From Amphiscolops sp. MND2022 (Eukaryota), in the NCBI GenBank assembly GCA_964187785.1, contig OZ076413.1:37014001-37078000 (forward strand): DNA of 64,000 nucleotides, read 5' to 3'. The notes under the pieces are model-generated. The model made no database searches. It worked only from the letters and a program-made list of their open reading frames with translations, and was not told the origin of the DNA. The translations under genes were made by a program, and so were the position numbers. Positions 16,796 to 64,000 of the stretch are shown piece by piece. Each line of letters opens with the position of its first letter. Position 1 is the first letter of the stretch.

Positions 16796-17022
16796 ATGGC
16801 CGACCCAGAAGGTACGGAAATCGTAGAGGAACCAAAAAAACGTACAAACAGACCACCCATGTAGTCCCCGACACCCGAAGGCACCCGGAAGAAGCTGAAA
16901 AAAGTGCGAAACCCAGTGTGGTGCCATGTGATGCAGGAAAATGTCGGAAGAAACCCCCCAGAATCAAGATGCAACCTGCCAGTGGATCTTTGCAAGAACT
17001 CCGGTACCTTCTTGAAGATGCC
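16796..17022 (+). pseudogene. Possible BED-finger N-terminal fragment of a DNA transposase
   Basis: MADPEG...RNPVWCHV...ATCQW resembles the start of a BED finger; contains an internal stop. Confidence 0.25.
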
Positions 17023-38640: not shown

Positions 38641-41600
38641 AAACTTTTGAATAGAAACTTTATGAATTGAATTCGTGATTGAACTCAAATCACTCAGAAT
38701 TCAATACTAGTTATCATTGAATCAATACGGAATAACGGAAACATCTAGCAAGTGAAATTGATCCATTGCAATCTTCACAACAAAGTTCTTGAAACCAATT
38801 TTAATATAGGTAAACCAATGACTCACCAAACGCGTAAAATGGTCAAGTTCATTACTGTGCTAGATGTTTAAACATAAACTAAACATGTGTTCATTTTCCA
38901 ACACACCACAGTGTTGAAGTATTGTTAGTTAGATGTATTTGAGACCCTTCAGAGGCGACTTCCTCGGCGTGGGTCTTGTTATGGGCGACACAATGTGTTC
39001 ACCAAACTGAGAGCCTCTTCAAAACTAAATTATACTAGGCAAAAGTATATTTTTTGTTGAGATTTGTAATCTCAGCAGTTATTTGGCCCGACAAAGTTGA
39101 TGGAAAAGTTTCACAAAACAAAACTTGTTGAAGAGAAAGTGGTCACGAATTTACAAATACAATTTCGTGAGTTCATTTTTTCACCGGGTTAACAGTTTTC
39201 TCTTTATGTTAAATGAAAGTAATTTCATTTTTATGTTATTTGAAGCTAAAAGGCTTGAAAACCAAATTTTTGAATAGCTACAGTGATACTAATTATATGC
39301 ATATATACACCACATATACCCACAAGTGAACGACAAGCAGCGCCACTTTCCTTTCACCTACGAAACTGACTTTGACAAAACTCAAGTGCGTAAAAATTTT
39401 GCTTAATGTCATGATCAGTTTGATTAAATCAAAATTAATCAAACTGATCATGACAGTAAGCAAAATTTTGAAACATAAACCTTATGGTTTGGATTTTTGA
39501 GATTACTGAAACATTAACGCATTGGAGTGAAGCATTGTAATAATACAAGCGTGATTGTAAAGCTGTTTAAAATGCAATCGTTACTTAGAACTGTTCAAAA
39601 TATTATACAAATCAATTACAAAACATTATACAATTCAAGTTTTTGATTTCAAAAATTTAAATTATTTTGTATCATGAATAGGCGTTATTCAGAATAATAA
39701 TTTATTCTTAACAACAAAATTCTTAATTGTATAACAAATCATTAGAAACATCATGTAAGTCATCATCAATAAAATCAATTCAACGTTAGGACAAATTACA
39801 AATTAACGATTTAAAAATCGTGAAAAATATCAGTATGTTAGTTACACAATACAGTTAGTTATGCAATACAGTCAGAGAAACGAAAGATAAGTTTGTGTGA
39901 GTTTAAGTTTGTTTGCAATGCAACGGCATGTAGGGGGAGGTGGCGTAGTTGAAATTTCCCTTGTGTATGAAGTGAAACTAGCACCGTTGTCTACCGCCGG
40001 ATCGATCCATTCACATACACACTCCTCGGCGACTCTATACAGACCACTCTGTATTACCACTTCACAGCGATCGGAAGGCATAATTAGAAGTCATAATTGA
40101 AGGTCCAATTAACTGCGCTACTGCATCCCTTTTTGATATGAAAAAAAATCCGTTGCTGATTGTTGGTATTCACAACGATAGGAAGGCACAATTGAAACTC
40201 CGTCCCTTTCTGATTTGAAAAAAGAATGAATCAGTTGTTGATTGTTGTTATCACAGCAATACGAAGGCACAATTGAAGATCCACTGCATCCCGTTTTGAT
40301 GTGAAAAAAAAAGATGAATCAGTTGTTGATTGTTGAGCGAAGAAATGATTTTTGATCACTGTATAATCAGATTGAATTTGTGCAACTCGTTAAACCTGGC
40401 AACGTAATATTTTACATGTATTAACACGCGTGTGTTGATACAATATTGGAAACAAAAGTTCACTTCAATGCTTGATGTTTTAGTTAATGCCAGTATTGAA
40501 CATCAACATAATATCAGTATTGAAAGCTAGTTTGTATCGAATTCTAAGTGATTTGAATTCAAAATGAAGTTGGCAAGATTAGATTTGATTACTGGTAAGA
40601 TCTGCGAATAAACTCACATTTAATCATCTGAATTCAAATTGAATCTGATCATACCAGTACTCAAAGTTCATTCAATCATCATTTGAATGTGAATTTTCAC
40701 AATGACAAAACCTGACCATGCCAGTAAACAAAATTCATAAAACTTGAATTTATTTCAATTATTGAATTTAGGTTTAAAATGTTCATTCCATATGAATTCA
40801 TTTCATGTGAAATTCACCCATTCATTTTTATCTGAATTTATCCGAGACTTAGTAAGATCGAAAATTGGACATCAAAAGGGATGCAGTGGCGCAGTGATCC
40901 TTCGATATGGGCTCTTCCTATCGTCGTTAAGAGGAACAACAACGATGTCTTTTGATATGAAGCGAGTCTTCATGAGGGTTGTCTGCATAGAATCGCCTAG
41001 CCAGTGGGTTGTTGGCAGGGATCGATCCGGAGGTACTATTAAACACGTTTAGCTTCAAATACCCAAGGGAATTATCAACTGCGCCACCATCCCCATTATG
41101 CTGAGGCATAGGACACATATAAATACTTTTGGAAATCTATACCAATCTATTGAAAAATATATACTGAATTAGCAATCAGTGAATATTGATTGAATTAGAG
41201 TCAAAAGAAAACATTTTGAGCCCATTACAATCAGTGATGTAAAAAAAATATTGTATTGAAATATATTGACAATAAATAAATAAAATATAGTTATTTGTGG
41301 TTTTGTACGATGCAATAAATTTATTTTTTGATCCAATGTATTTGTGTTTTCGGTCAATATATTCTATAATGTTATTAAATATTCGGATTTAGTTACTAGT
41401 CGTGTAGAAAAACCATTTCAGGAAGTTTCGTTAAAATTATTCAGGGTTTCTTTTAATTTCAAATGTATTACATATTGTTTTATATGAAAAAAAAATACCA
41501 ATAAATGCTATTAAAATTGTTGACAATGTTAAAAAATGTAAAGAAAAATGTAGACTCAAAAAATGATTGCATTTTAATTGTGAACAGCCCTGTTTGTGAT

Positions 41601-44148: not shown

Positions 44149-44680
44149 GGTCTGAGTGACCATGTCAAAAAAGAAATTTGTATGTCTGAGTGACCATGTC
44201 AAAAAAATTGTAGGTCTGAGTGACCATGTCAAAAAAAATGTATCTCTGAGTGACCATGTCAAAGATATTTCTAGGTCTGAGTGGCCTTGTCAAAAAAGAA
44301 ATTTGTAGGTCTGAATGACCTTGTCAAAAACGAAATTTGTAGGTCTGAGTGACCATGTCAAAAAAGAAATTTGTAGGTCTGAGTGACCATGTCAAAAAAG
44401 AAACTTGTAGGTCTGAGTGACCGTGTCAAAAAAGAAATTCGTAGGTCTGAGTGACCTTGTCAAAAAGATATTTGTAGGTCTTTGTGACCATGTCAAAAAA
44501 AATTGTAGGTCTGAGTGACCATGTCAAAAAAGAAGTTTGTAGGTCTTAGTGACCATGTCAAAAAAGATATATGTAGGTCTGAGTGACCATGTCAAAAAAG
44601 AAATATGTAGGTCGGAGTGACCATGTCCAAAAAATTGTAGGTCTGAGTGACCATGTCACAATCAAAAGGGGATCTGAGTG
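44149..44680 (+). repeat. Tandem array, ~30-34-bp unit GACCATGTCAAAAAAGAAATTTGTAGGTCTGAGT, ~16 copies
   Basis: Directly visible head-to-tail units without spacers. Confidence 0.95.
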
Positions 44681-44703: not shown

Positions 44704-47700
44704 TTATTCGACGCTATTGAATTTCCTTTTCAATGCTTTCTGGGCGGTTTTATACTTCCTGATTGCGGTATGGTATGTTATCGATCCAGCCCTGAGAGGT
44801 TGTGATTGTCTTTGTAATTGCGGCGCGATGTTCTGAAAACGTATTTTTCTCAATTTAGCCCTTGCTGTGGCATCCAGTTCAGAAGTGTATTCTTTGGGAT
44901 CCATCAACATGTTTCTCTTCACACATTCAGTAATGAATTCTGCTTTCAAGTAAATCCAATTGCCCAGGGTGGTATGATACACCGCTTTGGTAACAAGTGT
45001 CTCCTTCGTGCCGGGCGTGTTTTTTACCAAAGTATCTATGCACTTGCTATTCGGGAGAACACAGTAATGGTGGCTCAGGAAACTTAACTTGCTTCAATTA
45101 ATGGTGTCTGTATTGCTCAGAACGTTGCCAGCAGTTTCCAAAATCTTCCTCTCCAAGCTTCCTTGAGTTTCTTTCAAATGCCCATATGTTCCGAGAACAA
45201 CAAAGTTCATGCATCTGAAAATATCGCTCGTCCTTCCGATGTCAAGAGAGGGCACATCAATCGACTCTTGGCAAATCTGTAGATACATCTTGGCTAATTG
45301 GTCGGGGCACTGTTGAAGCAACTTCGACTTTGACGACGACAAATCAATGGCTCGAAAGAGAAAATTGTATGTCAAGATAATTTGACGACATATTCCAAGC
45401 ATCGTTCTCGTCGTCACGCATCGTTCTCGAATTGTAATCTTTGCTGGCTGTATGGTGACTCTTTTCTGTGCCTTCGGTCATGTAATTAAATGGGGCTAAA
45501 ATCTCTCCCTCTTCGAATATCCTCAGCAGCATGTCGATCTTCAGCTTGTACGGAGTCAAGGCACGATCCCCAAATAAACATATGGTACTTTGATAATATG
45601 TCTCGTAAAGGTCTTTACAACTTTGGAGATCAGCCAACTCCCGTTGTCGCGATAGCTCCAGCAATTGGTACAGCGATTGAAATTGCAGATCGGCCAATTT
45701 CCGTTGTCAAATACCAATGCCTCTCGGAAACGATGTTTCTAAACCGTCCACCAAAGAGATCAGTACATTATATGGTGTATTTTCATTCGCCTGATCAGCC
45801 CGGTAAACATGTGCCTCTTCGAATGAATATACACCTTCGAATATAGGAATATCCATTCGTCGATATTCGCTCGTCCGTGTACAGTCCGAGATGATGACTT
45901 CAGCGTCTCGAAAGCTCAGAGAAACAGCCTTACAAAGCTTATCAACTATTTCAAACCTGAAACGAGGCGGCTTTACATTTCTTTGTGTAATATTACATTC
46001 TAATTTCGATATCGCAAGCATGTTAGATAGGATCAGTGAATCGACGTGTAGCTTCAGATCACTTTCGACAGATCGAGCAATCATGTGAAGAACATCAGTG
46101 CACGTGTTGAATGTGGACTTCAAAAACATAAGCGATTCTTTTGGAATTTGTTCGTTGATATCAATAGTCAGCACAGTTCGTCTCCCAGTGAAATGATCAA
46201 CCGTGGAAGGAAGAACCGCACCCTTCCCTTCCTTCTCCTTCTTGTGTGCTTCACTGTTTTTTTCACTTGCTGCTTTGGGACAATTTGCGACAAAATGGGA
46301 GGATCAGGAACATACAGGCACATTTTCGAAAGGCATGAAACGTCACTACTGACTCCTTTCTGTAATCTCAGCTGGAAAGGCGAATCACCCGAACAACTCA
46401 AAATGGCTCCTTCTTCATGCAATGCTTTGGTTTCATTGTATAACTACCCAATGTGTCCTAATACGTTCGCCATTATCAGGTTATACTCTAAATTGACTCG
46501 TACATCTTTCCCCTGTGAAAACATACACCACATGGAAGATCATGCCAGTAGGCAAAATTAAAGAAACATAAAACTTTTGGAAGATCAAGCCAGTAAGTAA
46601 AATGAAAACAAAACGTAAACCACATGGAAGATGACGTCAGTTAGCAAAATTGTAAGAAATATATTCACATTGAAGATCAAATCAGAAAGCAAAATTGGAA
46701 AACATATAAGCCAAAAACTTACGTCGAAAACTGCGAAAGTGAAAACATGCGTCGAAGATTGTTCAGTTTCGATTCCAGTATCTAAGAAACGGAAGGCCAT
46801 TCTCACGACATCTCGTTTGCCTCGTGACATTGCATCACCATAAGTGTCGATTCGCAATCCTGAGATTTCTTTCCATAGACATGAAGGGCAAAAAATTCAC
46901 AAAGTTCACAAGGTTTACACGGAAGCCGGTATGCGTTCTCGATGGTTCAAGCATAGTTCCGAATAAATCATTCATCTGTCTATTGATGATTGAAAGTTCG
47001 AGTCGTGATGGCAATATCGTCGCTTTCACGAATGGGGACTTGAGTAACTGGCGTATCTTCACGAGAAGGTCCTGAGGATTGTTCAACATAAGGAGGCATT
47101 GGATATCGATTTGTGTTTCGTCTCTATCTTTACTGAAAAGATTTGGAAGTAGCATTCCGAGGAGTCGACAGACAATGGTATTCTTTCGTTTTGAAACATC
47201 TTTTTGTTTGTAGAGATAGTCTCTCAAACTCAGAGCGAACTGATTCAGGGATTCGGCTGACTCTGTCAAAAGTTTAAATAAATTAGACAAGAACTGTGAC
47301 TTCGCCGACTTCTCATAAGCAAGCCTGAACTGGCGATACTCGATTGATATGGCATCGTTTGTCAGAGCATTTGATGTGTTTGGAACCGTGTCACCTCAAG
47401 TTGATTGAATTGATAAGTTTGTCGATAAGTCGGCTGGGGCATCGGGTGCGTTCAGGATCGATACATCAACAGTCTTCAATTCTTGTGCGTCGATGCAAGC
47501 AAGGGGCAAAGTTGGATAGAAATGTCTCAAAAATTGTAGTCTTTCGGGAGACCAAGGAAGTGCACGGTGGGGCATATATCATCATGAGATCAAATATATC
47601 TTCTCGCAGTGCAGCAGATCGTTCGGACTTGATCCCTTTAGGCTTATAGACATCGTTGATCTGGACTTTTGACCCGTTGAAATGGTTCTCGATGTATGTT

Positions 47701-47843
47701 TTGATCTTTCGTGGGCCATTTTTCTCGAGACCATTTTTCTTCTCGGGATGTCGGGGGAACATCGTTGGAAAGAGAACGTTCAGGAAGACAAGCTTCACAT
47801 AATTTGCTTTCCCGTCAGAGATGGTGGGTTTTTGCTTGAACAT
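44704..47843 (-). pseudogene. Tpase-1: RAG1-core/Transib-related DDE transposase with C-terminal BRCT; one 210-nt intron
   Basis: IDTYGDA..VVRMAFRFL; FD|GKD; CSGDSPFQLRL; DVLHMIARSVESDLK; LTPYKLK; TEGTEKSHH. BRCT: IFRCMNFVVLG...LERKILETAGNVL...YLKAEFITECVKRNMLMDPKEY. Stops and frameshifts present. Confidence 0.75.
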
Positions 47844-47869
47844 GTCAAACTAAAATTTAAAACATTGGG

Positions 47870-48330
47870 ATGAAACGTCATGTCAAAAAAGTGACAATGT
47901 CAAAAAAGAGATTTGCAGTGCTGAGTATAGGATATTTCAAAAAATATATATTTGTAGGTTGCAGCGACCATGTCAAAAACAAATTTGTAGGTCTGAGTGA
48001 CTATGTCAAAGCAGGACTTTGTACTACCTAGTACTACATAGGTCTGAGTGACCCTGTCAAAAAAGAGTAGGTCTGAGTGACAATGTCAAAAAAGAAATTT
48101 GTAGTGCTGAGTGACCATTTCAAAAAAAATATATTTGTAGGTTGGAGTGACCACGGCAAAAACAAAATTTGTAGGTCTGCGTGACCATGTCAAAAAAGAC
48201 TTTGTACTACCTAGTAGGTCTGAGCGACCCTGTCAAAAAAGTGTAGGTCTGAGTGATTTACATGATGAGTGACCAAATGATTTCAAAAAAAAGTTTGTCA
48301 CAAGACCTAGTAGGTCTGAGATTTAATAAA
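47870..48330 (+). repeat. Second, more degenerate 34-bp-unit array, immediately 5' of Tpase-1
   Basis: Same GTAGGTCTGAGTGACCATGTCAAAAA motif, about 11 copies. Confidence 0.9.
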
Positions 48331-48524
48331 TTGGCGAATCGTCAAAAATGGTAGAGTCGTTGCACAATGGTGGGAAGGTTTCTTGGGACTCAGGTAATAG
48401 GACGTGCTCAACGGTCGGTGGTCGGATACAGCCTCAGAGGATGGTGGGTCAGAGAATGGCGTATTAGATTCAGGGTCAGAGGTTGGAAGTCAGAGGTTGG
48501 CGGATTAGAGGTTGGTGGGTCGGA

Positions 48525-51500
48525 TTACACAGTAACAGCAGTAGGTCTCGAACAAAATTCGCCTTTGCATTTTGGGTCTTTGTAATTGAAGCATATTTCT
48601 TCCAACGCGTCTATGTCTCTCTTTGCGATGGAAAAAAAGAGCGTTCTTTCCGTTTATCACCATGCGCTTCTTTCGTACATTGCATTGTGGGCGATTATCT
48701 GGTCTATAATTTAAAAGTCTTCCGAATGTTCTTCGTCCAGGGTGGCATTCACAAGTGTCTGAAGTTGCATCAAATACTATGTCGCCACAGTGTAGAATAT
48801 ATTGCGTGTGTTCACGTTGGTACATTACGGACTGTGTGATGATCACATCTGTGTGATAGTCACAGACAACTTTGCGTTTGTTGATTGGGGTCGTTGCTAC
48901 TACGCCTCGTCCAGAAGCACCATTGTCGAAAACGATCTTCTCGCATATCTGAAGGAACGGCTAATGCTGACTTGCCACGAATTCAGTCACTTTCTGCATG
49001 TTGGCGATAGCAGATGTGAAACTGCAGAAGAACATGTTGTGTCCTCTACTGTGTGAATGAGGAGTCGTGTCCTCAGTCGGAGTGTGGCGCGTCGATCTTC
49101 TGTTTTCGGAAACAGGGGCTGGTTTCCATAGAGCGAGTGTGCTATCTACAATCCTCGCATGATCGGCCCAACCACGGCTTCGCACATTGTTCACAACAGT
49201 GGTTTTGGAAGGAGCTGTAGATCCAGCCAAAACTTGCAACATCTTTTGGACACGTAATTGTACAATTTCGTAACGCAAATGATCGTTGATTTTTTCCCCC
49301 AGCTCTTGCGCTACAGCCTTGTCCATAGACGTGTTTTCCATGATCGTTTTGCGACAGTGAGCAGGCGTCGGGACCTTTTCATCGACGTTCGTTGGGTGTC
49401 GGAAGTACTTTTTCACCTAGAAAATCTTAGATGTGAAAATCATTGGTCAATCATAATTTGATGATCTGATCATGCCAGTAAACAAAATTAAATCAAAAAT
49501 TTTTCACTAACAAATCAAAAACGTTTGATAAGTTTGTATTGTCTCATGTTTCGAAAACAAGATAATATTGAGTTGCATATAGAAACAGTGAGTTGTGAAA
49601 ATCATTGGTTAATCATACATTGATGATCTGATCATGCCAGTAAACAAAATTATTTCAAAAACATTTTTACTAACAAGTCAACGTTTGATAACGCTTGATA
49701 ATTTTCTATTGTCTCTTGTTGTGAAAACACAAAAATTTACCCCATTAAAACTTCCAACAAAATCGGAATCCGAATAGAAAACTCGTTTCTTGGAAGTCGG
49801 CGACATGGTCATCATCTCGTTCTGTGAAATGCGCGCCTTCTTCAAGTTGACGGTCGGGTCATCAATTGTGCTTGGGCGAGGGTTCTCGTCATCGTCGTTT
49901 ATCCTTTCCTCATCAGGGCCAGCAACAATTGCTTTCCGTTTCTTTTTGTGAGTTGCATTCATCTTGCTTTGAAGTTTTCGCAGACTCTTGAAACATTCAA
50001 TTGTTTACTGCCCTGTGAGTTGTAGAAGAAGGACTGGGTTCTTTCTTTGAAATCTGCGGCAATTGTTGCAACGTCAAAACTTTCATTCAGGACTCTCAGT
50101 GCAACAATCTAAACTGGTCTGATACGTTTGAAAAAAAAATGTCAAAACACTTTTCTCGAATTTGGTAAACCTGAGGGCAGTTCTATATTTGTACTTGCTC
50201 CCGTCTTCAACGGCAACCACGAAGCTGCCACTGCCATTTTCGTTGAAATTCACAAAAGCATAGACAGTGAATTGCTTCAGAAGGCGCGAGGGGTAGCTAT
50301 TGATGTAGCACCACATTATCATTAGGCATTGGAAGACCGGCAGAGAATCCTCTTTTGGGGGCGTCTTGTCGCAGTCAACCAGATGCTGAATGTGGGCGCG
50401 ACCTTCAGCCCACTTTTTCATCGCCTGGGATCACTCATCACTTGGCGGCATTGCTGGTGGTAATTTGGAAGGGGTACCTCGGTTGACCCTCTTACTAGCA
50501 TCTTGGCTGTCTTGGCAAGATCTTGCCAAATTCTTACTACATCTTGGCAACCATGGATACCATGGCAAGATTCTTATTAAGATCTTACCAAGATAATATT
50601 AAAATTACTAAGACAAAACATATTCCAAAATCGTATCTTATCACGATGAACAAAATTTTAAGATTATAAAAAAAACACTATACGTTCGGTACAAGCAGCC
50701 GAGACTCAATCTAAGGGCTCATTTCACCCAACAACGACTATTTCTACTCGTTTTCATAATCAAAATGCTTAAACCTGCTGAAAAAATTTTGCATGCAAAA
50801 ATGCGTGAAAAATTACGATAACTGCTCACCTGTTTAGGACTGAGAAATGCGAATGTACCAAATAGATGGTCATTTCAAGGGCTTTCCAAAACTTGTAATT
50901 TATCACTCCTGTCGGTTCCAGATACGGAGAAATATTCTCTCAAACGTCCAGACCCACTATCGGAAAGTTACCCGGAAGTTTCGGAAAGGAAAGACCATAA
51001 ATCCGGAAATTTTTGTGATAATCATATTTCCAGCTTTCTTTGAGCCTGATTCAGCAGCCTTATCACTGCTAGAAACGACGTTCATTGCACTAATTTGGGT
51101 AATGATTCAGCTCAAGGCTTTTTGACGCCGTTGTTGGCGACAGTTTTGCAATTGAAAGAACAATTTAACCAGCGTCTTCCTAAATATATATCTCTCAACC
51201 AAATTTTATACATTGCTAACAGAAATTTTAATGTCTAACAACTGCAGAAATGTTGGTTTTTGCTGACTTCCTTTCAGATTTTTTTCTTTCCAAATAGGAT
51301 TTTACAATAAAAGTTTTCTTGGGAAAATGGCTCTCTTGATAAGATTTTACCATGACATCTTGCAATTCTTGCCAATATCTTGTCAAGATCTTAGCTAAGA
51401 TTTTTCCAAGATCTTGGCAAGATCTTGCCAAGATCTTACTAAGATATCCATGGAGGGTCGACCCGGGTAGGCATCTGACAGCAAGCTGCACCCGGAAATA

Positions 51501-52575
51501 GAACAGTGCTTATCGGAGGCACTCGCAAAGTCAATGCCTCAAAGCGGGGTCTATGCATCGGGTGCGGGTGTCGCATCGGAGTTGATGTCGATCCAGGATC
51601 AAACCGAGGGTTGTTTTCTGCTAGTACAACGTGGGGAGGGTAATACGTCGTGGTTTGTGCTGGAAATGAAACATCGTTATCACAAGAATAATTCGCAGTT
51701 GTTTGAAAAACCATTTCAACTAGTAACCATTTTTTCACTAGTATTCAACTCGTAATATCAGGGTTGGCCTGTTTGAAAACAATGTTTTAGGACACGCGAA
51801 TAAAAACCGTTTTAATACATTTTGAGATTTGAATAAGCTAATCTATTGTTATTTTTTGTTTTCGATTGTTTTCACCCCGTTTTTTGAATGTGATATATCG
51901 TGTATGTTCAAAAATTCGTTCGGGTTCAATTTCGTTGACAGGCCGCCAAACTCTGTTTTAGGTATAGCCAATTAAACAAGAAGTACTTTTCTTTAATTTT
52001 CATTCAATATAATTGAAGATTAAGAAACAAGAGCATCCGTTTTTTTCAGTTGGAAGTAAAAAATTCTTCAAAAAACAATATGAAACAAAAGACATGTTAA
52101 ATTGCATGAAAAACTGTTTGTCGAACTCTTTGTTTGAAAAAAAAACAAAAACAAGTCTTACGAAATATGAAATCCTAGATTTTCAGTTGTTTAAGATTAA
52201 CAAGTTATTAACCTCTTTTTATGCAGAAAAGTTTTTTCTATCTATTAGTTTGAAAATATTGTTTATCTGCATACTTTACCTAAATCTTGCCGATTTCTGG
52301 ACACAACACTGTCAAGAGGCGAGTTGGAAGCCTGAGGGACCGAATTGGACGACACAAATTCGTAGGGATCATAGACAGCTGGTTGGGTTGAGGGTTGATG
52401 GTGGGGTTGCCGTGGTTGCATCTCATGGTACCTAGGGGCTCCTCTATGGGTTGCGAATAACTGAAATTGGATGTTGTGGGTGGGGCGTCTTGTAAAACCT
52501 GATTAGCGACTTCTCGGAGATTGTGATAATCAGAAATCGAGTTGTTTGAAAAAAAAACATTGAGCCGCCGTTCAT
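48525..52575 (-). pseudogene. SET-1: multi-exon SET-domain (SET8/KMT5A-like) gene, disrupted; 5' exons approximate
   Basis: GRGVVATTPINKRKVVCDYH; FDATSDTCECHPGRRTFGRLLNY; RDIDALEEICFNYKD (after a 1-nt frameshift). Upstream exon 48961..49416 is homologous to SET-2 exon 60696..61055. Confidence 0.8.
50487..51457. mobile_element. 971-bp MITE with CCCT..AGGG ends and palindromic TTGGCAAGATCTTGCCAA subrepeats, inserted in a SET-1 exon
   Basis: ~40-bp imperfect TIRs; 4-bp flanks TTGA/TCGA. Removing it restores the frame TRV-NRG. Confidence 0.75.
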
Positions 52576-54375
52576 GATTGAAGATACAAATGAAAACTAT
52601 GAACGTAAAGGAAAGAAACGTTAAAGAAAATTTGTAATAGTAAAAGACAACAAAACTGGTTGAAGTGAAAAGTTACAGTAGAGTGACAACTGTAAAACTT
52701 ACTAAAACTAAATGGTATTTTGTTAACTTCAAATTATTTGAAAATTTTTGAAAGCTTAAAACTTTGAAAGCAAAATTAAGATGAACAGAAGTGATGTTTG
52801 AAATTTGTTAACTAATCTATTTAAATTTGAAGTGAAATTGAGATGTGGTATTATTTGACAATTGAGAATTCGAGGAAGTTGTAGAGTCAAGTTTAGAAGC
52901 GAGCAATACGAAACAAGAAAGGTGAAGAACTTAGGAACTGATCTCAGAAAATTTTGTTACACACCCAGAAAAAGAGGCAATTAAGCGATTACCTCATGTC
53001 AAGAGGTGATAAACTTTTTTCACTACCAATAATATTGACACCTATAATAATTAACTAACGGATAACCTCTAATAAACTCATGCCTTAAAGGATTACCCTC
53101 AAAGATAGGTGTTAGTAAATTAAATCAACTCAAACCAGTCATATACCAAAATCACACCTATGCATTGGATTTTTGCCTATTTACTCACATATTTGCCGGC
53201 CAGACTTACTTCATTACGGGGCCAAAGTGGGAAATGTTCAATTTTTCAAGAATCACGAAAAGTGGTAGTTTAAAGCAGCGAAGTGAATTTTTTCTCAATT
53301 CTTGAAATTTGAACTTCAAAGGAATTGTTTATGCCGCCTATAAAAGTCAAAAATTGAGAAAACAATAGTGCGCATGTATTTCCACTAATTTCAAGAATCG
53401 AGAAAAAGACATTCGACAATCTAGACACTAATTTTAATACATGGAGATAATGTGTTTACATTAGTTTGTCGATTCTCGAAATTTTGTCGATTCTTGAAAA
53501 TTTTGTCGATTCTTGGAAAAGTTATTGATTCTTGGAAATTGTCTGGATTCTTATACAATTTTCCCGAATTCTCATTCAAATGTTACAATAGTGAATTTAA
53601 TTGATCAGTTGGTAATTATTTTTTCATCAAATCAACGGAAGAATCATTGTTAAAATTATAATAAAGGTGTACAATTATTCCTCAGGTTAAATTGTTCTGA
53701 ACCAGCTAGATTCTAAGGTGCTAAACTAGTTTTTAATTGAGACTTTTACTAGATTTTTTGAATGAATAATTCAATTTATTGCAGCAAAGATTTTTTCTGA
53801 ACCAATAGCACCTCCATTTTAGCTTTTTACTTCGTTACTTGCCAAAAGTTACTTGTCAAAAGTTTCTAAACCGTGAGTAACAATTGAATTGACATCGAGT
53901 CTTTCAGAGAATTACTAAATAATTCTAATCCATGAGCAACAAAGGAAAAATTCCAATTGAAATCGAGTCTTTCAATAAATGATTAGAAACCAGTTGTCTG
54001 AAACCAGCAGGAGCATCAAAAGCAAAAGGAAATTGAATTCGAACCACACTTTGAACTTTCAATTTTGGCCACATCAATTTTGGCCACATGGAACAGGTTC
54101 CGGAAAACGAATTAGACCATCCTAATTGTTATCATCTCTTCGAGTCACTCTTGAGTTTTCAAAAACTTTTAAACCAGGAGTACAAAAGAAATAGTTGAAC
54201 TAATTCAAATTTGAACACGAAAATAAATTTCATTGAAGTTTACCAGAGTACAGAATCATGTTCACAATTACATCAAATATTCAGATTGTGCCTCTTTCAA
54301 ATTGTGTCGAATTTTTTCTCGGTAGCTTGAAGCTGGATACACCCCTTCAATTGTCACCAAACCACATTTAATGAA

Positions 54376-55720
54376 TTACATGCTGAATATTTTCCGGATA
54401 TAAAATCTCATTGACTTGATGTATTTATCACTTTCTTCGTATGAACCTGGTCTTCTGTCCCAAGATTTGCCGAGAACTGAGTCCCAAGATTCATTGCATT
54501 CAACTTCAGTGCAGGGATTTTGAATTGAAAACATGACATCTTTCTCATTTTCGAATCCAAGGCTTCTTTTTGCAAAATCGTCAGCGATGCAAATAATCCC
54601 GGAGTAGCCAAACTTGGACCCTTCACAGCTGATTAAATTCCACACACTTTATCGATGGGGTGAGTTAGTTCCTGTATCGAATTCTCGTGGGTAAATTTCA
54701 ATAAATAGTTGCGTTCTTTGAGTTATACCATAGTCGAAGGCATGGTCACAGTAACATCGTCACACTCTTCGGACACCATTGTCACGAAAACAATATGCTT
54801 GTCTTTTTTGTAAATTGACTTCATTTCGATCACTGTTGCCGCCTCACCAGAGTGATCAAGGACCTTGGCACCAATTTGAAGTGTCCCATTTATGCAGGGA
54901 AGTATTTCACCGGTACTCGTTGGACCGATTTCTGAAAAGTAAAAAAATGACTCATGAGACTCATCACATTTGACACATCCCGTGACTCATAACTCATCAC
55001 TCAAAAAATGATTTCTGAGAAAAACTGACTTTTTCTGAATCAAATTCAAAAAATGAAAAAAAAATGTTTTTAAATGAAGTGCTTCTATGGTTGAATACTT
55101 ACAGGGACCAATGTCGACATCTCGACAGGCTCAGCTGGCTTCTTTGCTCCAAAGGTTACTTTTTGGGCTTTGGAGCAGTTAATTTTTCTTCTTTTTCGTC
55201 ATTTGAACAATAATTTTCGTCTGCGATATCATCATGATTTGTCGACGAGGACGGTTTGTGACCGACTCGGGTGGCACATAGATCATTGTATGGAATTTTT
55301 AAAGTGGGATAGTTTGTGTTAAGGGCTTTGATTTCTTCGTGGTCTTCATGCCAATTTTCATAATCTTCCTCCAACAGAATTTCCATTACACATTTCACTG
55401 GGCCATCCTTCAAAAAACATACTTGATCGCAACGCGAAAGGAATTTTGGATTGTAATCAAGTTGTTCTTTTTTTTGTTCGACGGCGTTTTTCGGGAAAAA
55501 CATCTCTTATCGCCGCATATTTTCGAATGTTCCACTTTTCAGGTTGCCCCCTTATGTTTTCTTCTACGTGAATTTCTGATGCGGTCTTTTTGCCGAAATC
55601 TTTCCACTGCACAATCACCGTCCAGTCATCTTTGATAGATATTATCTTTGCCTTCCACCAAATAAAAAGTTCATCAACTGCATCGACAATGTCGTTAACT
55701 TGAAATTTTGTTGATAGCAT
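54376..55720 (-). pseudogene. Tudor/Royal-family (PHF20- or Agenet-like) domain gene, spliced and frameshifted
   Basis: KFQVNDIVDAVDELFIWWKAKIISIKDDWTVIVQWKDFG at the N-terminus. Donor GTAAGT ~55100 and acceptor TTTTCAG ~54933. Second barrel-like segment LQIGAKVLDHSGEAATVIE. Confidence 0.65.
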
Positions 55721-56719
55721 ATTTTTTTGGGATTTTTGGTATGAACGTAAGATGGAGTTAATTCGGGAATGAAATTTGAGATACGACAAAAAAAATGCTA
55801 ATCTAATATTTCGAAAATAAGCCTGTGAACTTCCGAGTGTGAAACTCATTTCTTTGCGTTTCGAAGACTCATTTTAGTGACAGTGTGACGCGTCACATTT
55901 GCCTTAAAAAGAGTCACTCTTTTTGGACACATTTGAACAAATCGTTGGCGGTCAAAGATTTGTTCAAATTGATGGGAGTTTTTTCAAACCAAAACGACTC
56001 TTTTCCAACGGGTGTAAATATCATGATAACATAATATGATAATATACTTGTTAAAGATCACAATTTTTTTATAAACCGTTATATCCTTATCTTATCATTG
56101 CTTTCAAACAATCAACTCATTGCTTATTATTCTCAAATGGATCTTTGGAAACAACATTCAATGATCATCGATGGCCGACATTTTATTGATTACGAATTTA
56201 TCGAGTATTTACGTGATCACACAGATGGAAAGAAATGCCGACAAGCAGAAGTCCTTGTAAAGCATGTCATCAGCGGAACCTCGTTGAACTGCGAGGATCT
56301 CATTGTGACATGGACCAAAAAAGGAATGAAACGTCACTCGGTCTTCATGGCAATAAGTTACTTCTGGTTGTGACACTTTTTCATCGTAAAAGTAGCCTCA
56401 TTTTGAGAAAAAACGCGTTTTTATATCAAAAACCTGCTTTTAAAGTAGTAATGATGAGGAATAAATCATCACTCGTGTTTTGGCAATTTTGTCGTCTTCT
56501 TCTAATGAAAAAAATTATTTTTATATCGATATAAGACTAAAACCTATATCATACAAATTTGTATCGATTTTTTCTAAACCGGGAGCAAAAAATTGCTCCA
56601 GAATCAGAAAAAAACCGAACATATACATTTCTGCATTTAAATTCAAACAAATGCTCACAGTTTAGAATTGATTATTGTTTTTTCATTTCAGGCTCAAATA
56701 ATGCAGCTGATTGTTCTGA

Positions 56720-59637
56720 GTGGCGACAAAAGTCTACCCGGTCACAAAAAAGAAATGCATTCATCAATGCCTTTTTGGGTTGGATTTGTACCCTGCAAAC
56801 CTTTTCCAGGATGTTGTTGCTTCAGCGACGAGTTGTTGTATCGCTTCTATGACAACTCAGGAGACACAAACAGACGAGAACGCAACGATTGAAACAACTT
56901 CCATTCAAAGAGACGCAGTCCCTGTGACTGAATCCCCTAAGTCCATATTTATCGACGAAGTCCCAGCGACTGAACACCCTGCCATTCGAATGGACGAAGT
57001 CTTCGTGACTGAACTCCCTAACATTATATGTATTGACGACGTCCCCATGACTGAATCTCAAATTCAGAACAATGGTGAAGCAACGATGGATTAGGAAAAC
57101 GTGTCGTCTCGAAATCGCAATACTAAGGCTCGAAAACTGGAACTGAAAAGAGTAGCAAGGTTGCGGAAATGTCCGTATAATTATTGGAAATACGTTTTGA
57201 ATCACGCCAAAACGAACAATGTTGACTTCGAGATACTAATAGAAGTGATCCTGAAAGTTTCAAAAACGAAACAATCATCGTATCTTAAAACAATTGTTAA
57301 AAAACGTTTCTCAAATAAGAAGTCCAAAGAGGCGATGATTTCAAGTCTTGCTATTTCGATTCGATCAGGAAATATTTATGATGTAATTTCAACGATCCGG
57401 GCAAATTTAGCCATCAACGGACAGCTGCACAACATTATTCCATCCTCAAGAGCGATCCGAAGATTTTCAAAGATCTTAACGAATGCGTTCATTTCGATGT
57501 GCAAACCAGAAGCCACGTTCTCAGGGTTTCGATTTGATCTCGTCAAGTGTGTCAAAATCGCAGCGTGGCTCCTTTTCGAAACTGAAGACCTTTCTGAATT
57601 GACTATCGATTTATGGGGAGATGGATGTGAGATTGGTGGTGTCGATCATACAAGAATGTGCTTCCGGATACTGAAGAATTATTCCTCGAAAGTTACCGTT
57701 CAATCAGCTACTGTGGCATTATGTTTCAGCGCATTTCATGGTAAAGATAGTAGATTTACCCTTGAACAAAATCTCGGACCTTCAGTTCTTGGCAACCAAG
57801 AAACAGGATGGCTGTACAAACAAACCAAAGAACTCTCATCTCAAGGTGCCATCGTGACTTGTTCTGGAGACAATCCTTATTTATATCGTTTGATTGAGGG
57901 TATTGATAGCGATGCCTCATCAAAATATCCACCTGATCTTGCACTTTATGTCGGTGAGGCGAAATTTTTACTAACTGATGTCGACCCTGCAACAGGATTC
58001 CGCTACAACGTTGATGTGCCCTTCAGGAGAGAAATACCCCCTCAATCACTCGTACATCTCGATGACATACGATGTGTTGTACCGGATGTCACCCACATGA
58101 TCACCCGTTGTGTCGAAAGTGATCTCAAGAAAGTTGCCCAAAAAATTGTTCGAGAAAAATATCCTTATCACAAGAAAACTATTGAAACTCTCGAAGAAAT
58201 CTGCACTCGAAGAGAAATAAAGAAACCCAGATTCAAATTCGACGTGTAGATCAGAGGAACAAGTGATTTGAAAAAACCAACAGTTGGACCCGTCTCTTTG
58301 TCTGGAACGTCTGCTATTGTTGCCATTGCCGAAAAAGATGAATTTGAAGGTGTAGAAGGCTTACCAAATATTTTCGACAATTTATGGAACAATGAGACTA
58401 TCTTTGACCCCAAGAACGACAACATGGAAAACGATGATGCCCGTGCAGCCCGCAATGCGTTTTACGCCCTCGAGAAACTGCACTCCGACAAAATTCCAAA
58501 TTCAGACAGTTATAAAACCAAAGATTGTGCCCAATTGCTACAAACAAGCTTGAATAAATGCGCAATACTTTTGAGATGTTCAAAAAATGGTCTTGACATT
58601 GAACAATTTGAATTTTGGTCTGAGACATAATATCAATGCTCAATTCTTTTCTTTTCCGGATAAGACGGTTTGACACCATATAAGTTGAAGATGATAATGA
58701 TACCCCAGATTTTGAAGCATATGTATCATATGTTTGAAGCAATGGAGAAATCAAATCACCACGCACATAAAGACTTCCAAACGAGAGATGGAGGTAAAAT
58801 TCATAACCCAGATCCGTTATTTTACGAGGGTTTTTTCTCATACTGCCGTTCTTTGAATGTGGTGTCAAAAACCCGAAATAAACCAGTGAATTTGCTAATC
58901 GATAAATTGACCACCACTTTCGCAACCGAAAAAAGCGAGACCTATACGGAAATTTGTCATAAAATTGTGCCCCTTCCATGATTGATATTGGTGCTCAGCG
59001 AAAGAAACAGGAATTGCTCTTTGGTTTCCAATTCCACGTGGTTGGCTTTTTCCCTGGAGTCAAAGACAATCAAAAGGGAGTTGAAAACTTGATAATTGAA
59101 TTGGGTGGAGAAGTATTGACAAAAGAAAAAGCCCTGGGCTTGACCAAACGTCATAGTAAAACTCCGAATTGCTTCTTTGTACTCTATAACGATGTCGAGT
59201 TGAAGAGGGCCACCACTGGAAACGGAGACCACAACTCTGCATCTGGTTCGGAAAGTGACAACCCCGTGAAATCTACCAAATCATCATCCAGGCGAACAAT
59301 CAAGCCACGTATCACGGCGAAGGGCCCAGCTCAAACCTGTCTACTATTTGCGGCAACGGATTTTCAATTCCCGAACGTTGCCTACATCTTCGATACAAAC
59401 AACTCTGATCGTTTTCTTGACCCTTCAAAGTATCTTATGTCAAGTGCCACTGAAATTGAACGAATCTGTGTGAATGATCAACGACCACTTTTTGCGAAAC
59501 AGAGAAATCCTAACAATACCGAAAACGTTACCACATCATTGGTTTATGCATTGAAGGTCTCGAGAAAGCGGGCCCGCGAAGAAGAACAAGAAATTGACCA
59601 CGTAAATGATAGTATGAAGAAAGAAAAACACACATGA
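56720..59637 (+). pseudogene. Tpase-2: RAG1-core/Transib-related DDE transposase with C-terminal BRCT (extra 5' exon(s) likely near 56100-56370)
   Basis: One frame from 56720 to 58981 with in-frame stops ending at 57094, 58249, 58630 and 58663, then a frameshift in a C4 run. Candidate catalytic D at 57620 (WGDG), D at 57869 (SGDNP), E at 58745 (AMEKSN). BRCT: LLFGFQFHVVG...VENLIIELGGEVL...VAYIFDTNNSDRFLDPSKY. Confidence 0.8.
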
Positions 59638-59908
59638 ACATTTTTTAAATGACAGTGCTTTTGACATGGATCATCTAATCCTATCATTTGTATGACTTTT
59701 CGAAAATTTATTCTTGGTCATTGAATGATCATCTATGATGTTTTCAAAATCTTTCTCCTGATCACTGAATGATCGTCTATGATGTTTTCGTAGAAAAAAC
59801 CATATCTCTTGTAGAAATATCAAAAAATCAAATGCTTGAAAAATGAATAAACCAAATCAATAATTCAAATATCAAATCATTAGTTATTCAAAAAAGTTTT
59901 TACTAAAC

Positions 59909-62170
59909 TTATTTATTCTGAAACATCTTTCTTGCTTCTTGATCCCCATACTCATATCTTAGCTCTTCGAAGGGAGGAATGTCATGTTTTGCCACCATTA
60001 ACAACACAACTTTGCTGGAGGATAGATTCAAAATAACAGGTTTGACGTTGGTGTGCTTAGAAGATTTGTGGTTTATCAACCGGGCCATGCATATATTTTT
60101 CATATGATCGACTACTGGACAAATTTCGTTTGAAGCATCGATTAGATGTTTCAGTGAAATCTGAAAAAGAAATTCACTGCCTTCTGGGTGATCAGCCATG
60201 TAATCGTTGGCAGTGATGCCCTTTACGACTTTTCCATGGTAATCAGCAAGGATTTGATCCTTGTCTATGAAATCGGTGGCAATGACTCCTCGGCCGAATC
60301 CTTTGAAGTTGACGTCACATATGAATGGCCACGTCTGATCTTTGCAAGTTTTCGTCAGGATCTTTTTGAATTGTTCATGCTGATCTTTTGAGGGGAGCAT
60401 CAAAGCCTGTGATCGTAACGAGACAGTCGGCGTCTGGAGTGCCTCGGGTTTCAACTGAAATTGAACGATTTTCCAGGTCTGAAAAGAGTTGGTGTTTATA
60501 ATCAAATTTATACTTGCGATTTTGTGAAATTTCTTTTCAAAAAATATTTTTTTATATCTTCAACAAATTCTTCTTCAATAAAAGTCAATGCTCTTGAATC
60601 TCTCAATTCAATGCTCTTAAGAGAAAGTCTCTACTGAAGTTTTTTTAAAGTGACATATTTTGATTGGAAAATAGACAGCAGAAAAACTGAAATACCTTTT
60701 TCAGGTCTTCATTCTCGTCCCACCCTCTTGTTTTGTACAGACTTTTGAGTTTCTCATGGGTCGGGTCCTGGGCGTGACGTTTTCCAAAATCACAATACTC
60801 GAGGAAAGCCTTTGCCCTTGCGACTTGTCTCACATATCTTTGGGCATTTTGCCGGGAAACGACAGCTGACGCAAGTTCTCGCTCAGTGATTTCATTTTGG
60901 GCCGCCCACTCTTTGTCAACGTTCAAGGCCCGTATTTCAGACATTTCTCGTTTCTTTTTCAAAAATGTTGCATCGGGCGTTGCTGTTTTTGGCATATAGG
61001 ATTTGACGTATTTTCCCACTCTGTTCTCGATGGTGTCGCGGCTTCTTTTTTCCATCTGCAGAAAAATCATTTGAAAATATTTCTAAACCATGAGCACATC
61101 TTTTCAATATGCAAAAAAATAATTTTAAAATACCTCTAAACCACAAGCACATCTTTTCAATGTTCAAAAACGAATCATTTGAAAATATTTCTAAACCACG
61201 AGCACATTTTTTCAGCAATTGTTCAAAATATTTTTTAAAAATACCTTATCCAACACTTCCTCCGCAATGACTCGAGGATTGAAAGAGGTCTTTCCCATTG
61301 ACGAAAAGAAAATTTTGGTTTTCATAACTTCTTCAATTTCTTCGTCTTCGCTTCTGAATCAATAATTTGAGTGGTTAACAAAACAAGTTTACTTGATCTA
61401 GTTTTTTCTCCAAAATATTGAAAAAGACAACAAACAAATGGAAAAAAAAACAAAAAATGAAAGTCTTGGATGAGAAAATACTTTACCGAAAAAAGGTTCC
61501 ACCTCGATTTCACCAGCACCATTTCCGCTCTGCTTGGCGTTGATGATGAGTTGCATCATCGAATGCACAATAACAGATTGTACCGTCTTTGTCATCATGG
61601 GAACCGGCTCAGTGTACATGAAAAGGTATGTTATAATACCGTGAAATAAATTGATCCTTTGATGGTAACTAAGGCCATCGTTTACTGTATATTCGTCCAA
61701 AATTTCGCGGACATAACTCTCTAATTCGGGTCGTACCTTTGCCGACCAGAGTCCTTTTGCAGCATTTCGTTTTGATTCAGTTTAGTCTCGGGGTTTCGGA
61801 AGTAGAGGTCGTTTTAACGGATTTACTTTTTCGGTGGTTGGGATGTCGTCAAAAATACCGGAATTGGTTGATGGTAAAATTTCAAAAACAATGTTTTCTT
61901 GAGTGTAATTGCACGTGCGGTTTCCATAATTTGTTGCCTGAATGGGACTCTCACTTGGAGTGAAACTGAAATTACTCACAAAAGGAGTCTTGTTAGAACC
62001 CATTTGGTAGTTGGGAGTAGACTGATATAATGCATTCGAATTGTGCGAATGATTAGTATATTGTGGAAGCGGAGGAGGTAACAAAGGTGTGAGGGAAGTT
62101 AGCTGAGTCTGTGGTAACGAGCCAAGAAAGTTAGTGCTCGAGTTAAGATCAATTTGTCTGACTCGACATT
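59909..62170 (-). pseudogene. SET-2: multi-exon SET-domain (SET8/KMT5A-like) gene, convergent with Tpase-2
   Basis: GFGRGVIAT, ADYHG, ARLINH, HDIPPFEELRYEYGD; no Cys-rich post-SET. Phase-0 intron 60479-60695 joins KK|TWK; acceptor at 61056. Last two exons are open; disablements lie in the 5' part. Confidence 0.9.
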
Positions 62171-62269
62171 GTGAAACTTTGACAGCAGTTATAGAGAGCA
62201 GAAATTGAAAAGTGATTCAAAATTGAATGCAGCCGCCTAAATATATATCTTTAATTACCCACATCATGT

Positions 62270-62366
62270 GATAATCCAATGACACCATGCCAAATCGCGG
62301 ATTATCAATTGACACCCTTGGTGTCATTCCATAATCCGCGATGTCGCATGGTATCAATGGATTATC
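62270..62366. repeat. Imperfect ~47-bp-arm hairpin upstream of SET-2
   Basis: GATAATCCAATGACACCATGCCAAATCGCGGATTAT... pairs with ...ATAATCCGCGATGTCGCATGGTATCAATGGATTATC; 3-nt loop. Confidence 0.8.
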
Positions 62367-63059
62367 AATAAATTGATGCTGATAAAATGCCCATTAATCT
62401 TCCGCAGTAATTGACATAATTACTTCATCGCACATTTTAAAATGAAATTTAAAAAAGACTACTTTACCTTAATTTGTTGAAACTCTAAAAATAATCGGCG
62501 CAAAATTATTAAACATGCTTGAAGAATTCAGAAATGGATAATTAACCATCAACCTCATGTTTAAAGATAGAAGTTTGGATATTTAATCGATTTCTTCTTG
62601 GTCCCAGAACGCCACAAGAATTCACGTAAGCATAATTAAACATGGTTTCAAGAAACCTCACACGCATGATTAACCATGGCAAATTTTCCTTTCAGGCAGT
62701 AGCACGTGGAGTTTAATCAATTTGCTGCGCAATTTTTGTGGTTTCTCCGAACTAATGAATAAACATTCGTATTCGAAAACTTTTCCATGTTTAATGCTCC
62801 TGATTTAGAAACTTTATATTCTGAATAATTTTTACATGATTCAAAATCAGGTTATAACTTCCTGAACATTTTAGCTACTCTTGCACTCATGGTTTAGAAA
62901 CTTTCTCTGCTGAAGATTTCTCATAGAACTTTGTATTCTATTAGCAAAATAAAAAACTTTGTTGAATTCTAACTTCAGCGACCCACATCGCTCATGGTTT
63001 GGAAACTTTTACTTGATTATTTTGAGAACTCGATTTTTGAGCGACTCATATGTTCATGG

Positions 63060-64000
63060 TTGATGCCAGCGCTGTGGCCATCTCTGGCATACTCCATCAG
63101 TGGCAAGGCCCACACGGAGAAAGACGTCTCCGACCGATCGTAGCTATTGTAGCAAAAAGCTAACTGCTACTCATGCGAAGAACGTGGCACCCAAACTGGA
63201 AATGTACGCAGCTTACCACTTAAATGTGAAAAATGACAGTTATTTGTGCCCACGAAAGTTCACATTGAGAGCGGATGATCAGGCACTGTCGTGACTGAAA
63301 ACGTCCTCAACCGATCAAGCCCTCATCGGTAGAGGGATCATGGCACTTGAGAAGTACCATTTTCGTGACGAGCATCGACCACGAACTCAACAGCGCAACG
63401 CCGATGGCCTGTCAAAGCGGACCAATGATTATCAATGGCGCGAACAACCGCTCGACAAGCTTCCTCCTGTTGCTGAGCGTTGGAACTTTCTCTCACAGGC
63501 CGAATATAAACGCCTACCCACTGCGCCGTGGTTCGATGTACAGGGACAGATCATTCCCAACCACCCTGATTTACCACCACACTTGCAGAACTTGCAACCA
63601 ACCCCTCCCAACTTGGTTCAAGGCATCATTCGTCGAACGCAACGAATCAAAAGACAAGAAAAGCAAAAGGAGGCCTTTCAGGAGCCGCTGCCACCACTTC
63701 CTCTAACAGTCCTACATGCTCATGAAGAGTTTTACCCCGACTATCCGGAAGACTGGATAGATGTAACGGAAAAGGCAAGCGATGATTACTTGCTGCCTAC
63801 GCAGGTAGCCAATATTCGCATCACGTACTACCTACCCGCTGGTCGAAACCAACGGAGCAACGTTGCAAAGTGATCCCAACAACGTCAAACAGGAAACAGA
63901 CAGTAATGGCCATTCGAAGCATCAGCACTGAGCTGCTTGAACATGCCCACATGGTACATGGCATTAAAGACATGGTGCTGGCACAGAACCGGGATATTCA
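63060..64000 (+). mobile_element. pol: Gypsy-3 pol fragment (RNaseH C-terminus and linker), 5' truncated, continues past window
   Basis: FTLRADDQALS*LK...IMALEKYHFRDEHRPRTQQRNADGLSKR matches the Gypsy RNaseH end F.LRTDH..L.WL...HRP....NAD.LS. Confidence 0.85.

Follow-up and report, generated by a model that had tools for sequence, protein, structure and literature searches.

A decayed DNA transposon of Amphiscolops with a RAG1-shaped, BRCT-tailed transposase and probable SET, JmjC and Tudor-like cargo

In ProtoRAG, the gene for the RAG1L-type transposase and its partner gene are arranged convergently. Transib, for its part, has been placed in the broad CMCT clade of DNA transposons, together with EnSpm/CACTA, Mirage, Chapaev, Plavaka, ESTA and Lanisha, whose members have CA..TG termini, make target duplications of 2-5 bp and encode transposases that resemble RAG1 by structure-level comparison and conserve C(2)C and H(3-4)H motifs; fungal transposons (KDZ, Plavaka, ESTA) are also known to carry TET/JBP genes (Kojima 2025, PMC12730594). 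Here, we analyzed a stretch of 64,000 nucleotides from Amphiscolops sp. MND2022 (GenBank assembly GCA_964187785.1, contig OZ076413.1, positions 37,014,001 to 37,078,000; hereafter the window, whose own numbering is used below), which contains two transposase-bearing units, unit 1 (44704-50421) and unit 2 (53212 to at least 63060). The region is eukaryotic, with open reading frames (ORFs) that are fragmented. Our results make it very probable that unit 2 represents a cut-and-paste transposon of ~18-22 kb whose RAG1-shaped, BRCT-tailed transposase travels with SET, JmjC and Tudor-like cargo genes under selection. Both window copies are dead.

The element resembles the CMCT clade in having CA..TG ends (CATTACG...CGTAATG), a short duplication (apparently 2 bp) and a RAG1-resembling DDE transposase, and some members of that clade likewise carry epigenetic enzymes, i.e., TET/JBP in fungi. 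Points of difference are the C(2)C and H(3-4)H motifs, which inspecting the alignment did not bring out, the BRCT tail of the transposase, an animal host, and a cargo concerned with histone methylation instead of a DNA demethylase. That is, both this element and the fungal TET/JBP transposons are DNA transposons that carry and keep genes for epigenetic marks, but the latter carry one DNA-methylation gene and the former three genes for histone-lysine methylation, the third of them tentatively so identified. A full-text literature search found no published DNA transposon with JmjC and SET cargo, and no published link of Transib/RAG1-like transposases with BRCT or SET; the closest parallel is provided by the fungal TET/JBP carriers.

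Ends, gene order and interruption of the element

Relatives of unit 2 were taken from the contigs of a single ENA assembly, ERZ25074608, where relatives of its transposase (Tpase-2) show 52-94% protein identity; loci are denoted below by L numbers and homologous proteins by P numbers. In all seven loci compared, homology begins at one base, with 5'-CATTACG(A/G)(C/G)GCCAA, corresponding to window position 53212, and to the left of this base the seven loci are mutually unrelated. At least 11 contigs per public run start their match precisely at 53212, with dissimilar sequence before it. Further, three complete copies are present in the related contigs, one of 18,388 bp (L002) and two of 18,417 and 22,358 bp (L018 and L019), in which the right end repeats the left end exactly in reverse complement, forming a perfect 22-nt inverted repeat (CATTACGACGCCAATCGGGGAA), and the flanks are unrelated on both sides. 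The gene order in these complete copies is Tudor/Agenet-like (-), transposase-BRCT (+), KMT5A-like SET (-) and PHF8/KDM2-like JmjC (-). The window is collinear with L002 between 54299 and 61778, a span that takes in the Tudor-like, transposase and SET genes, and these three genes keep the same order and orientation in L001, L016, L018, L019 and L020. The original prediction for this DNA, made from its letters alone, was of a transposon family that inherits a SET gene and a reader-like gene as components, and it holds in that gene order and exact terminus are common to seven loci; the actual unit, however, is larger than had been proposed (~18 kb) and includes a JmjC demethylase gene. The features of unit 2 in the window are as follows.

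53212-53233, + strand: left terminal inverted repeat; window version CATTACGGGGCCAAAGTGGGAA, family consensus as given above
53234-53600, no strand: subterminal repeats containing motifs of the TTCAAGAAT type in either orientation; 19-bp array at 53465-53552
54299-55849, - strand: gene tentatively identified as Tudor/Agenet-like, in several ORF pieces; barrel-like part 55460-55849
56098-59637, + strand: Tpase-2, RAG1-fold DDE transposase with C-terminal BRCT (58978-59637); pseudogene
59909-62177, - strand: SET-2 gene; SET-domain exon 59909-60505, upstream exons ~60648-61055, 61194-61355 and 61404-62177
62178-63060, no strand: internal non-coding stretch common to L001; palindrome at 62269-62367, GTTTAGAAA-type motifs
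63061-64000, + strand: high-copy retroelement fragment, which breaks unit 2 ahead of the JmjC part

The original prediction had reported no termini and proposed to define inverted repeats and target duplications by aligning the flanks of multiple copies. This alignment gave the 22-nt inverted repeat and an apparent 2-bp duplication, and termini are now located for unit 2 (53212, with the right end known from three copies), but not for unit 1. The left and right flanks of the three complete copies read CCAAA and AAGAC, TGGGC and GCTGA, and TGTTT and TAATT, respectively. A 5-bp duplication was looked for at these three copies and not found, while the two bases on either side of the element are AA/AA, GC/GC and TT/TA, that is, five of the six positions agree (chance expectation ~0.005). 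The target duplication is thus tentatively 2 bp. Subterminal motifs of the TTCAAGAATTGA type lie at 53240-53574 in the window and also near both ends of the complete element L002, within 320 bp. In the public runs, word depth is 5-10-fold higher in the first ~270 bp (53192-53478) than in the flank and in the element interior, pointing to numerous short derivatives or solo ends. In run X2, one contig follows the left flank as far as 53211, where it passes into unrelated sequence; this may represent an empty site, or else the flank may be repeated and the contig derive from another of its copies.

Unit 2 shares 92% identity with L001 from 53212 to ~63060, including the stretch from 62178 to ~63018-63060 (90% identity). 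From 63061 onwards, many contigs match the window and depth is ~10x higher; before the position equivalent to 63061, these contigs carry different, mutually similar sequence. An ORF at 63340-63873 has a pol-like motif. Because a high-copy retroelement starts at 63061 and L001 runs on past the equivalent of 63060 into JmjC, unit 2 is interrupted before its JmjC part, and a search for a JmjC remnant within the window found none. Other copies of the retroelement in the reads extend leftward with shared sequence that is absent from the window copy, and the latter is therefore cut at its 5' side. In short, a retroelement has broken a large cut-and-paste DNA transposon, of which unit 2 is the left half. 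Two other candidates for a terminus were rejected: a 20-nt inverted pair at 53859 and 62885, which is a dispersed GTTTAGAAA-type motif and points outward, and the end of window/L001 homology at 63060 as the right terminus, given the retroelement start at 63061 and the continuation of L001 into JmjC. Scans for inverted repeats around unit 2 and L002 proved misleading for termini. The GTTTAGAAA-containing motif also makes up a 53-bp tandem array within the SET-2 gene (61048-61214), occurs again near the 63060 break (62885-63010), and is found inverted ~650 bp inside the left end (53859-53940).

The family has few copies, with ~10-14 loci among the transposase search matches, and several rearrangements were observed among them. 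L001 contains a tandem partial duplication (L001:6460-18212) of the stretch matching window 55264-58644, i.e., the 5' part of the Tudor-like gene and most of the transposase, and of the two resulting transposase copies the second has the longer ORFs (724 and 243 aa). In L020, a 1,864-bp tandem duplication (L020:3437-5301) covers the left end of the element together with flank, and the terminus is present twice. A satellite-like dispersed repeat with a period of ~81 bp occurs in the window outside the element (39872-40335, 1779-2100) and in element interiors (L002:15370-19238, L016:14349-17007); in L016 and L020, it puts ~6 kb between transposase and SET. Finally, an insertion of ~200 bp resembling a miniature inverted-repeat transposable element (L002:9721-9926) disrupts the transposase in L002, L018 and L019, and has inverted copies at L002 positions 15392-15611 and 16840-16999.

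The transposase and its place among RAG1-like enzymes

The main stretch of Tpase-2 is 57101-59637 (+), with a conserved N-terminal extension from ~56098. Comparison with uninterrupted homologues revealed the breaks in the gene: it runs in a single frame to 58981, yet stop codons interrupt this frame at 58247-58249 and within 58631-58669, and close to 58975, ahead of the BRCT part, there is a frameshift. An exhaustive protein search returned 215 cluster representatives for the family, all without names, including an uninterrupted homologue of 845 residues (P0021) with 37% identity to Tpase-2. Modelled with 98 aligned relatives, P0021 reached a predicted local distance difference test (pLDDT) value of 92, and the first 49 matches of this model in a Foldseek search of the PDB were all RAG1, Transib or amphioxus RAGL (BbRAGL). 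By VIA-align, model residues 122-621 align with RAG1 residues 479-1006 (Z 20.0), followed by HzTransib (Z 18.3) and BbRAGL (Z 17.5), as opposed to only 12.4 for the P element. The tail of the same model, residues 664-791, matches the BRCTs of BRCA1, MDC1 and 53BP1 at Z ~10.5 (best 10.6, VIA-align); window 58978-59589 aligns to this part of P0021, and four long homologues have a Pfam BRCT or BRCT_2 match, one of them above cut-off. Hence, a RAG1-like core followed by BRCT, as had been read from the window, was confirmed by the fold of a full-length homologue.

At the level of sequence, the relationship to RAG1 is invisible. Pfam scans of the window pieces and nine long homologues gave no RAG1 family match, and neither phmmer nor a 28-sequence profile searched against all PDB sequences matched RAG1 or Transib. 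In the AlphaFold DB, many uncharacterized eukaryotic transposase-like proteins rank above RAG1 in fold, and therefore we place the family in the broad RAG1-like group rather than in RAG/Transib itself. Inspection of the alignment showed no conserved C-x2-C or H-x3-4-H motif; its consensus contains RCVCPDxTH..RC and, ahead of TEAxEKSNHH, only one conserved H.

The Transib/RAG1/ProtoRAG enzymes (PDB 6pqx, 6xnx, 6b40) are the best solved matches to the core, over ~400 residues (Z 17.5-20), and the element transposase is likewise convergent with a second gene. In contrast to them, the element lacks detectable sequence similarity, apparently makes a 2-bp rather than a 5-bp duplication, has CATTACG instead of the CAC heptamer at its terminus, carries no RAG2-like gene and has BRCT added. 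The proposed RAG1/Transib relationship thus stands for the fold (Z 20) but not for sequence, duplication length or termini. The CA..TG ends, together with the apparent 2-bp duplication, suggest that the element belongs in the CMCT clade at large and not in Transib/RAG proper.

Cargo genes, selection and an older relic

The exons of SET-2 were mapped using the L001 and L002 products. SET-2 matches Pfam SET with E 5.4e-10 (40.1 bits, cut-off 22.4), and the convergent arrangement with Tpase-2, with stops 271 bp apart, is as had been described. Its nearest solved relatives are KMT5A/SET8 chains (E ~3e-7). The JmjC gene (-) is decayed and adjoins the right end in complete copies; it is found in L002, L018 and L001. 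A split ORF of L021, outside the window, gives a Pfam JmjC match (8.4e-5) just under cut-off and has PHF8 (7.8e-10), KDM2A (2.5e-9) and also KDM7 as nearest solved relatives. These proteins are the closest solved counterparts of the two enzymes (E ~3e-7 for SET, ~8e-10 for JmjC), but the N-terminal regions of the element SET and JmjC proteins are unrelated to those of KMT5A/SET8 and PHF8/KDM7/KDM2, and no PHD finger was seen in the element protein pieces examined.

We only tentatively identify the third cargo gene as Tudor/Agenet-like. It is collinear with its counterparts in L002, L016 and other loci, and its C-terminal part (54299-54900) is conserved, with its fold unassigned. Pfam Agenet matches occur in three of seven copies (E 0.019-0.028, below cut-off), and a language-model atlas gave PHF20L1, Agenet and SAWADEE (Royal-family readers) as leads, all with scores <0.9. 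A profile of the gene had no match among PDB sequences, and the homologue search returned three near-identical proteins only. The AlphaFold model (pLDDT 41) is unusable; the predicted secondary structure consists of two three-stranded sheet units. Accordingly, the Tudor gene that had been reported head-to-head with Tpase-2 exists as a set of ORFs at 54299-55849 (-), while its Tudor identity is weakly supported (sub-threshold Agenet matches, pLDDT 41). Pfam scans of the transposase neighbours turned up SET, Tudor/Agenet-like and JmjC, and no other family such as a RAG2-like gene.

To assess selection, dN/dS, i.e., the ratio of nonsynonymous to synonymous divergence, was compared between the L002 and L016 lineages, whose synonymous divergence is ~0.9-1.7. 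It was 0.12-0.14 for the transposase, 0.12 for the SET domain, 0.20 for the N-terminal part of the SET protein and 0.10-0.17 for the Tudor-like gene; for JmjC, compared between L002 and L018, it was 0.17-0.30. In pairs of young copies, the ratio drifts towards 1. Since the inter-lineage values are equally low, the cargo was as constrained as the transposase during lineage divergence; that is, purifying selection acted equally strongly on both, and all present copies have since decayed.

The cargo is not found throughout the family. The locus L008:2352-5463 is a simple metagenome relative of ~3.1 kb, with one transposase gene tightly between 48-nt inverted repeats that hold the CAATCGGG motif, also present in the 22-nt end of the unit 2 family. 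Each of the L008 inverted repeats contains two CAATCGGGATTT motifs. Neither SET nor Tudor was seen in the short flanks of twelve metagenome loci (among L003-L015) and L017, flanks that, except for L008 and L005, are too short for a firm statement on cargo in the metagenome loci. Because distant relatives lack SET and Tudor, the cargo appears to be a feature of one sublineage.

Unit 1 bears on the age of this association. Its recognizable parts are the following.

44704-47843, - strand: Tpase-1, a deeply diverged, frame-broken transposase relic scattered over several frames; BRCT remnant 44704-45030
47890-48256, no strand: 34-bp tandem array between SET-1 and Tpase-1
48508-48960, - strand: SET-1, a decayed SET domain with its C-terminal part lost; upstream ORFs to 50421 are only putative parts

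Tpase-1 has ~30% identity to P0021, P0008 and P0012 (tblastn), matches Tpase-2 and L002 (tblastx), and gives a weak BRCT_2 match (E 0.042). As had been stated, Tpase-1 and Tpase-2 are too diverged to compare at the DNA level and are homologous at the protein level only; both transposase genes are present in the arrangements described, and both are pseudogenes. SET-1 and Tpase-1 are indeed co-oriented with the 34-bp array between them, and a second array of the 34-bp unit lies at 44149-44658, so that the two arrays flank Tpase-1, one on each side. SET-1 matches Pfam SET above cut-off (6.8e-6, 26.9 bits) and is 32% identical to the element SET in L020 (E 1e-12), as opposed to no match at E 0.1 or better among solved SETs. 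An old association of SET and transposase is supported by SET-1 being closer to the element SET than to any solved SET. A further claim, that the two SET genes are homologous outside the SET domain, was not reproduced: comparison of the upstream ORFs of SET-1 with the SET-2 exons outside the domain detected no homology (hhalign E 0.46-0.82; hmmsearch E >1). The order in unit 1 is SET then transposase, co-oriented, which differs from the canonical order; a Tudor or JmjC remnant was looked for in unit 1 and none was found, and a CATTACG-like site at 43260, a possible end of unit 1, has no partner that we could find. Therefore, the argument from repeated pairing in two old paralogs survives in that SET-1 is closest to the element SET, but is weakened by the different gene order, by the lack of a Tudor or JmjC remnant and by the lack of homology beyond the domain. 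Unit 1 is a relic, much older than unit 2, left by a related lineage in which SET was likewise present, in a different order.

What the cargo may do for the element can be outlined from what is known of its relatives. KMT5A writes H4K20me1 and PHF8 removes it, i.e., the closest solved relatives of the element SET and JmjC act on the same mark, and Tudor and BRCT proteins act at DNA breaks. The transposase would bind the 22-nt ends and the subterminal repeats, excise the element and insert it with a 2-bp duplication; its BRCT tail may attach at the break to repair or chromatin proteins that are phosphorylated, and the element's three methyl-lysine proteins (writer, eraser and reader) could reset the chromatin on or around it, which would either allow escape from silencing or steer the repair of element-made breaks. 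The strictest form of this model is a self-contained module for a single mark (KMT5A-like writer, PHF8/KDM2-like eraser, Tudor-like reader) which, together with the BRCT-tailed transposase, would write and read chromatin at the donor or target sites of the element and so direct break repair or avoid heterochromatin, and we regard it as rather unlikely.

Alternatively, the transposon might be real and its SET, JmjC and Tudor-like genes be host genes that were captured passively and serve no purpose for it. Capture of host genes is a known behavior of DNA transposons, and the distant relatives fit such a scenario: L008 has a single gene, and the flanks of L003-L015 and L017 show neither SET nor Tudor. 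Nonetheless, cargo order and orientation have been kept across lineages whose synonymous divergence is saturated, cargo dN/dS (0.10-0.20) equals that of the transposase, the three cargo genes all concern lysine methylation, and even the diverged relic unit 1 keeps an element-type SET. Passive capture is, hence, improbable.

Remaining alternatives and implications

The model originally proposed for this locus was a Transib/RAG-type element whose transposase has SET, and not RAG2, as its obligatory partner. It is attractive in view of the RAG1-fold core, the convergence of transposase and SET (as in ProtoRAG) and the retention of the pairing in all cargo-bearing copies. However, neither single-protein nor profile searches matched RAG1/Transib, the duplication is apparently 2 bp and not 5 bp, many uncharacterized transposase-like proteins are nearer in fold than RAG1, SET-less relatives exist and the gene order of unit 1 differs. 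Nothing shows that SET replaced RAG2 as a cofactor, the distant relatives being single-gene elements without SET, and we consider this model a poor candidate. Finally, a host cluster of a domesticated transposase and chromatin genes, spread by segmental duplication and not by transposition, would be consistent with the purifying selection on all genes between lineages, the absence of an intact transposase and of a clean 5-bp duplication, and the ~10-14 loci, but is hardly credible given three copies with perfect 22-nt inverted repeats at both ends and unrelated flanks on both sides, seven loci with the same first base, many contigs that break at 53212, and stops, frameshifts and insertions in the genes of every copy.

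Hence, we favor the hypothesis of a cut-and-paste transposon that carries its chromatin genes as cargo under selection. It is important to note that several points weigh against this hypothesis. The evidence for the fold comes from P0021, a homologue with 37% identity, and not from the broken genes of the window themselves; the 2-bp duplication rests on three copies; the assignment of the Tudor gene is weak; and dN/dS values <1 would arise in duplicated host genes as well. No intact copy was seen, every transposase examined in the contigs of this animal being interrupted, which also means that transposition activity is historical. Further, the source assembly is filed as a metagenome and some near-identical pairs could be haplotypes, although these possible haplotype pairs nevertheless differ in their flanks at both ends. 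Lastly, family resemblance is the sole basis for the proposed chromatin function, for its substrate and for any connection of BRCT with repair.

Transposons are commonly regarded as being acted upon by histone methylation, and not as bearing genes for the enzymes that place and remove this mark. An animal DNA transposon family that keeps a methyltransferase, a demethylase and a reader-like gene represents a direct, testable case of the manipulation of chromatin or break repair by a mobile element, and, if the single-mark module were true, such an element would program the chromatin and repair of its host and not merely evade them. The defined 22-nt ends and gene set make a genome-wide census and a transposition assay possible. 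The family also adds a deep, sequence-invisible branch, with other ends and other partners, to the group of transposases from which RAG1 arose, and this branch bears on how RAG1 gained its chromatin-reading partner.

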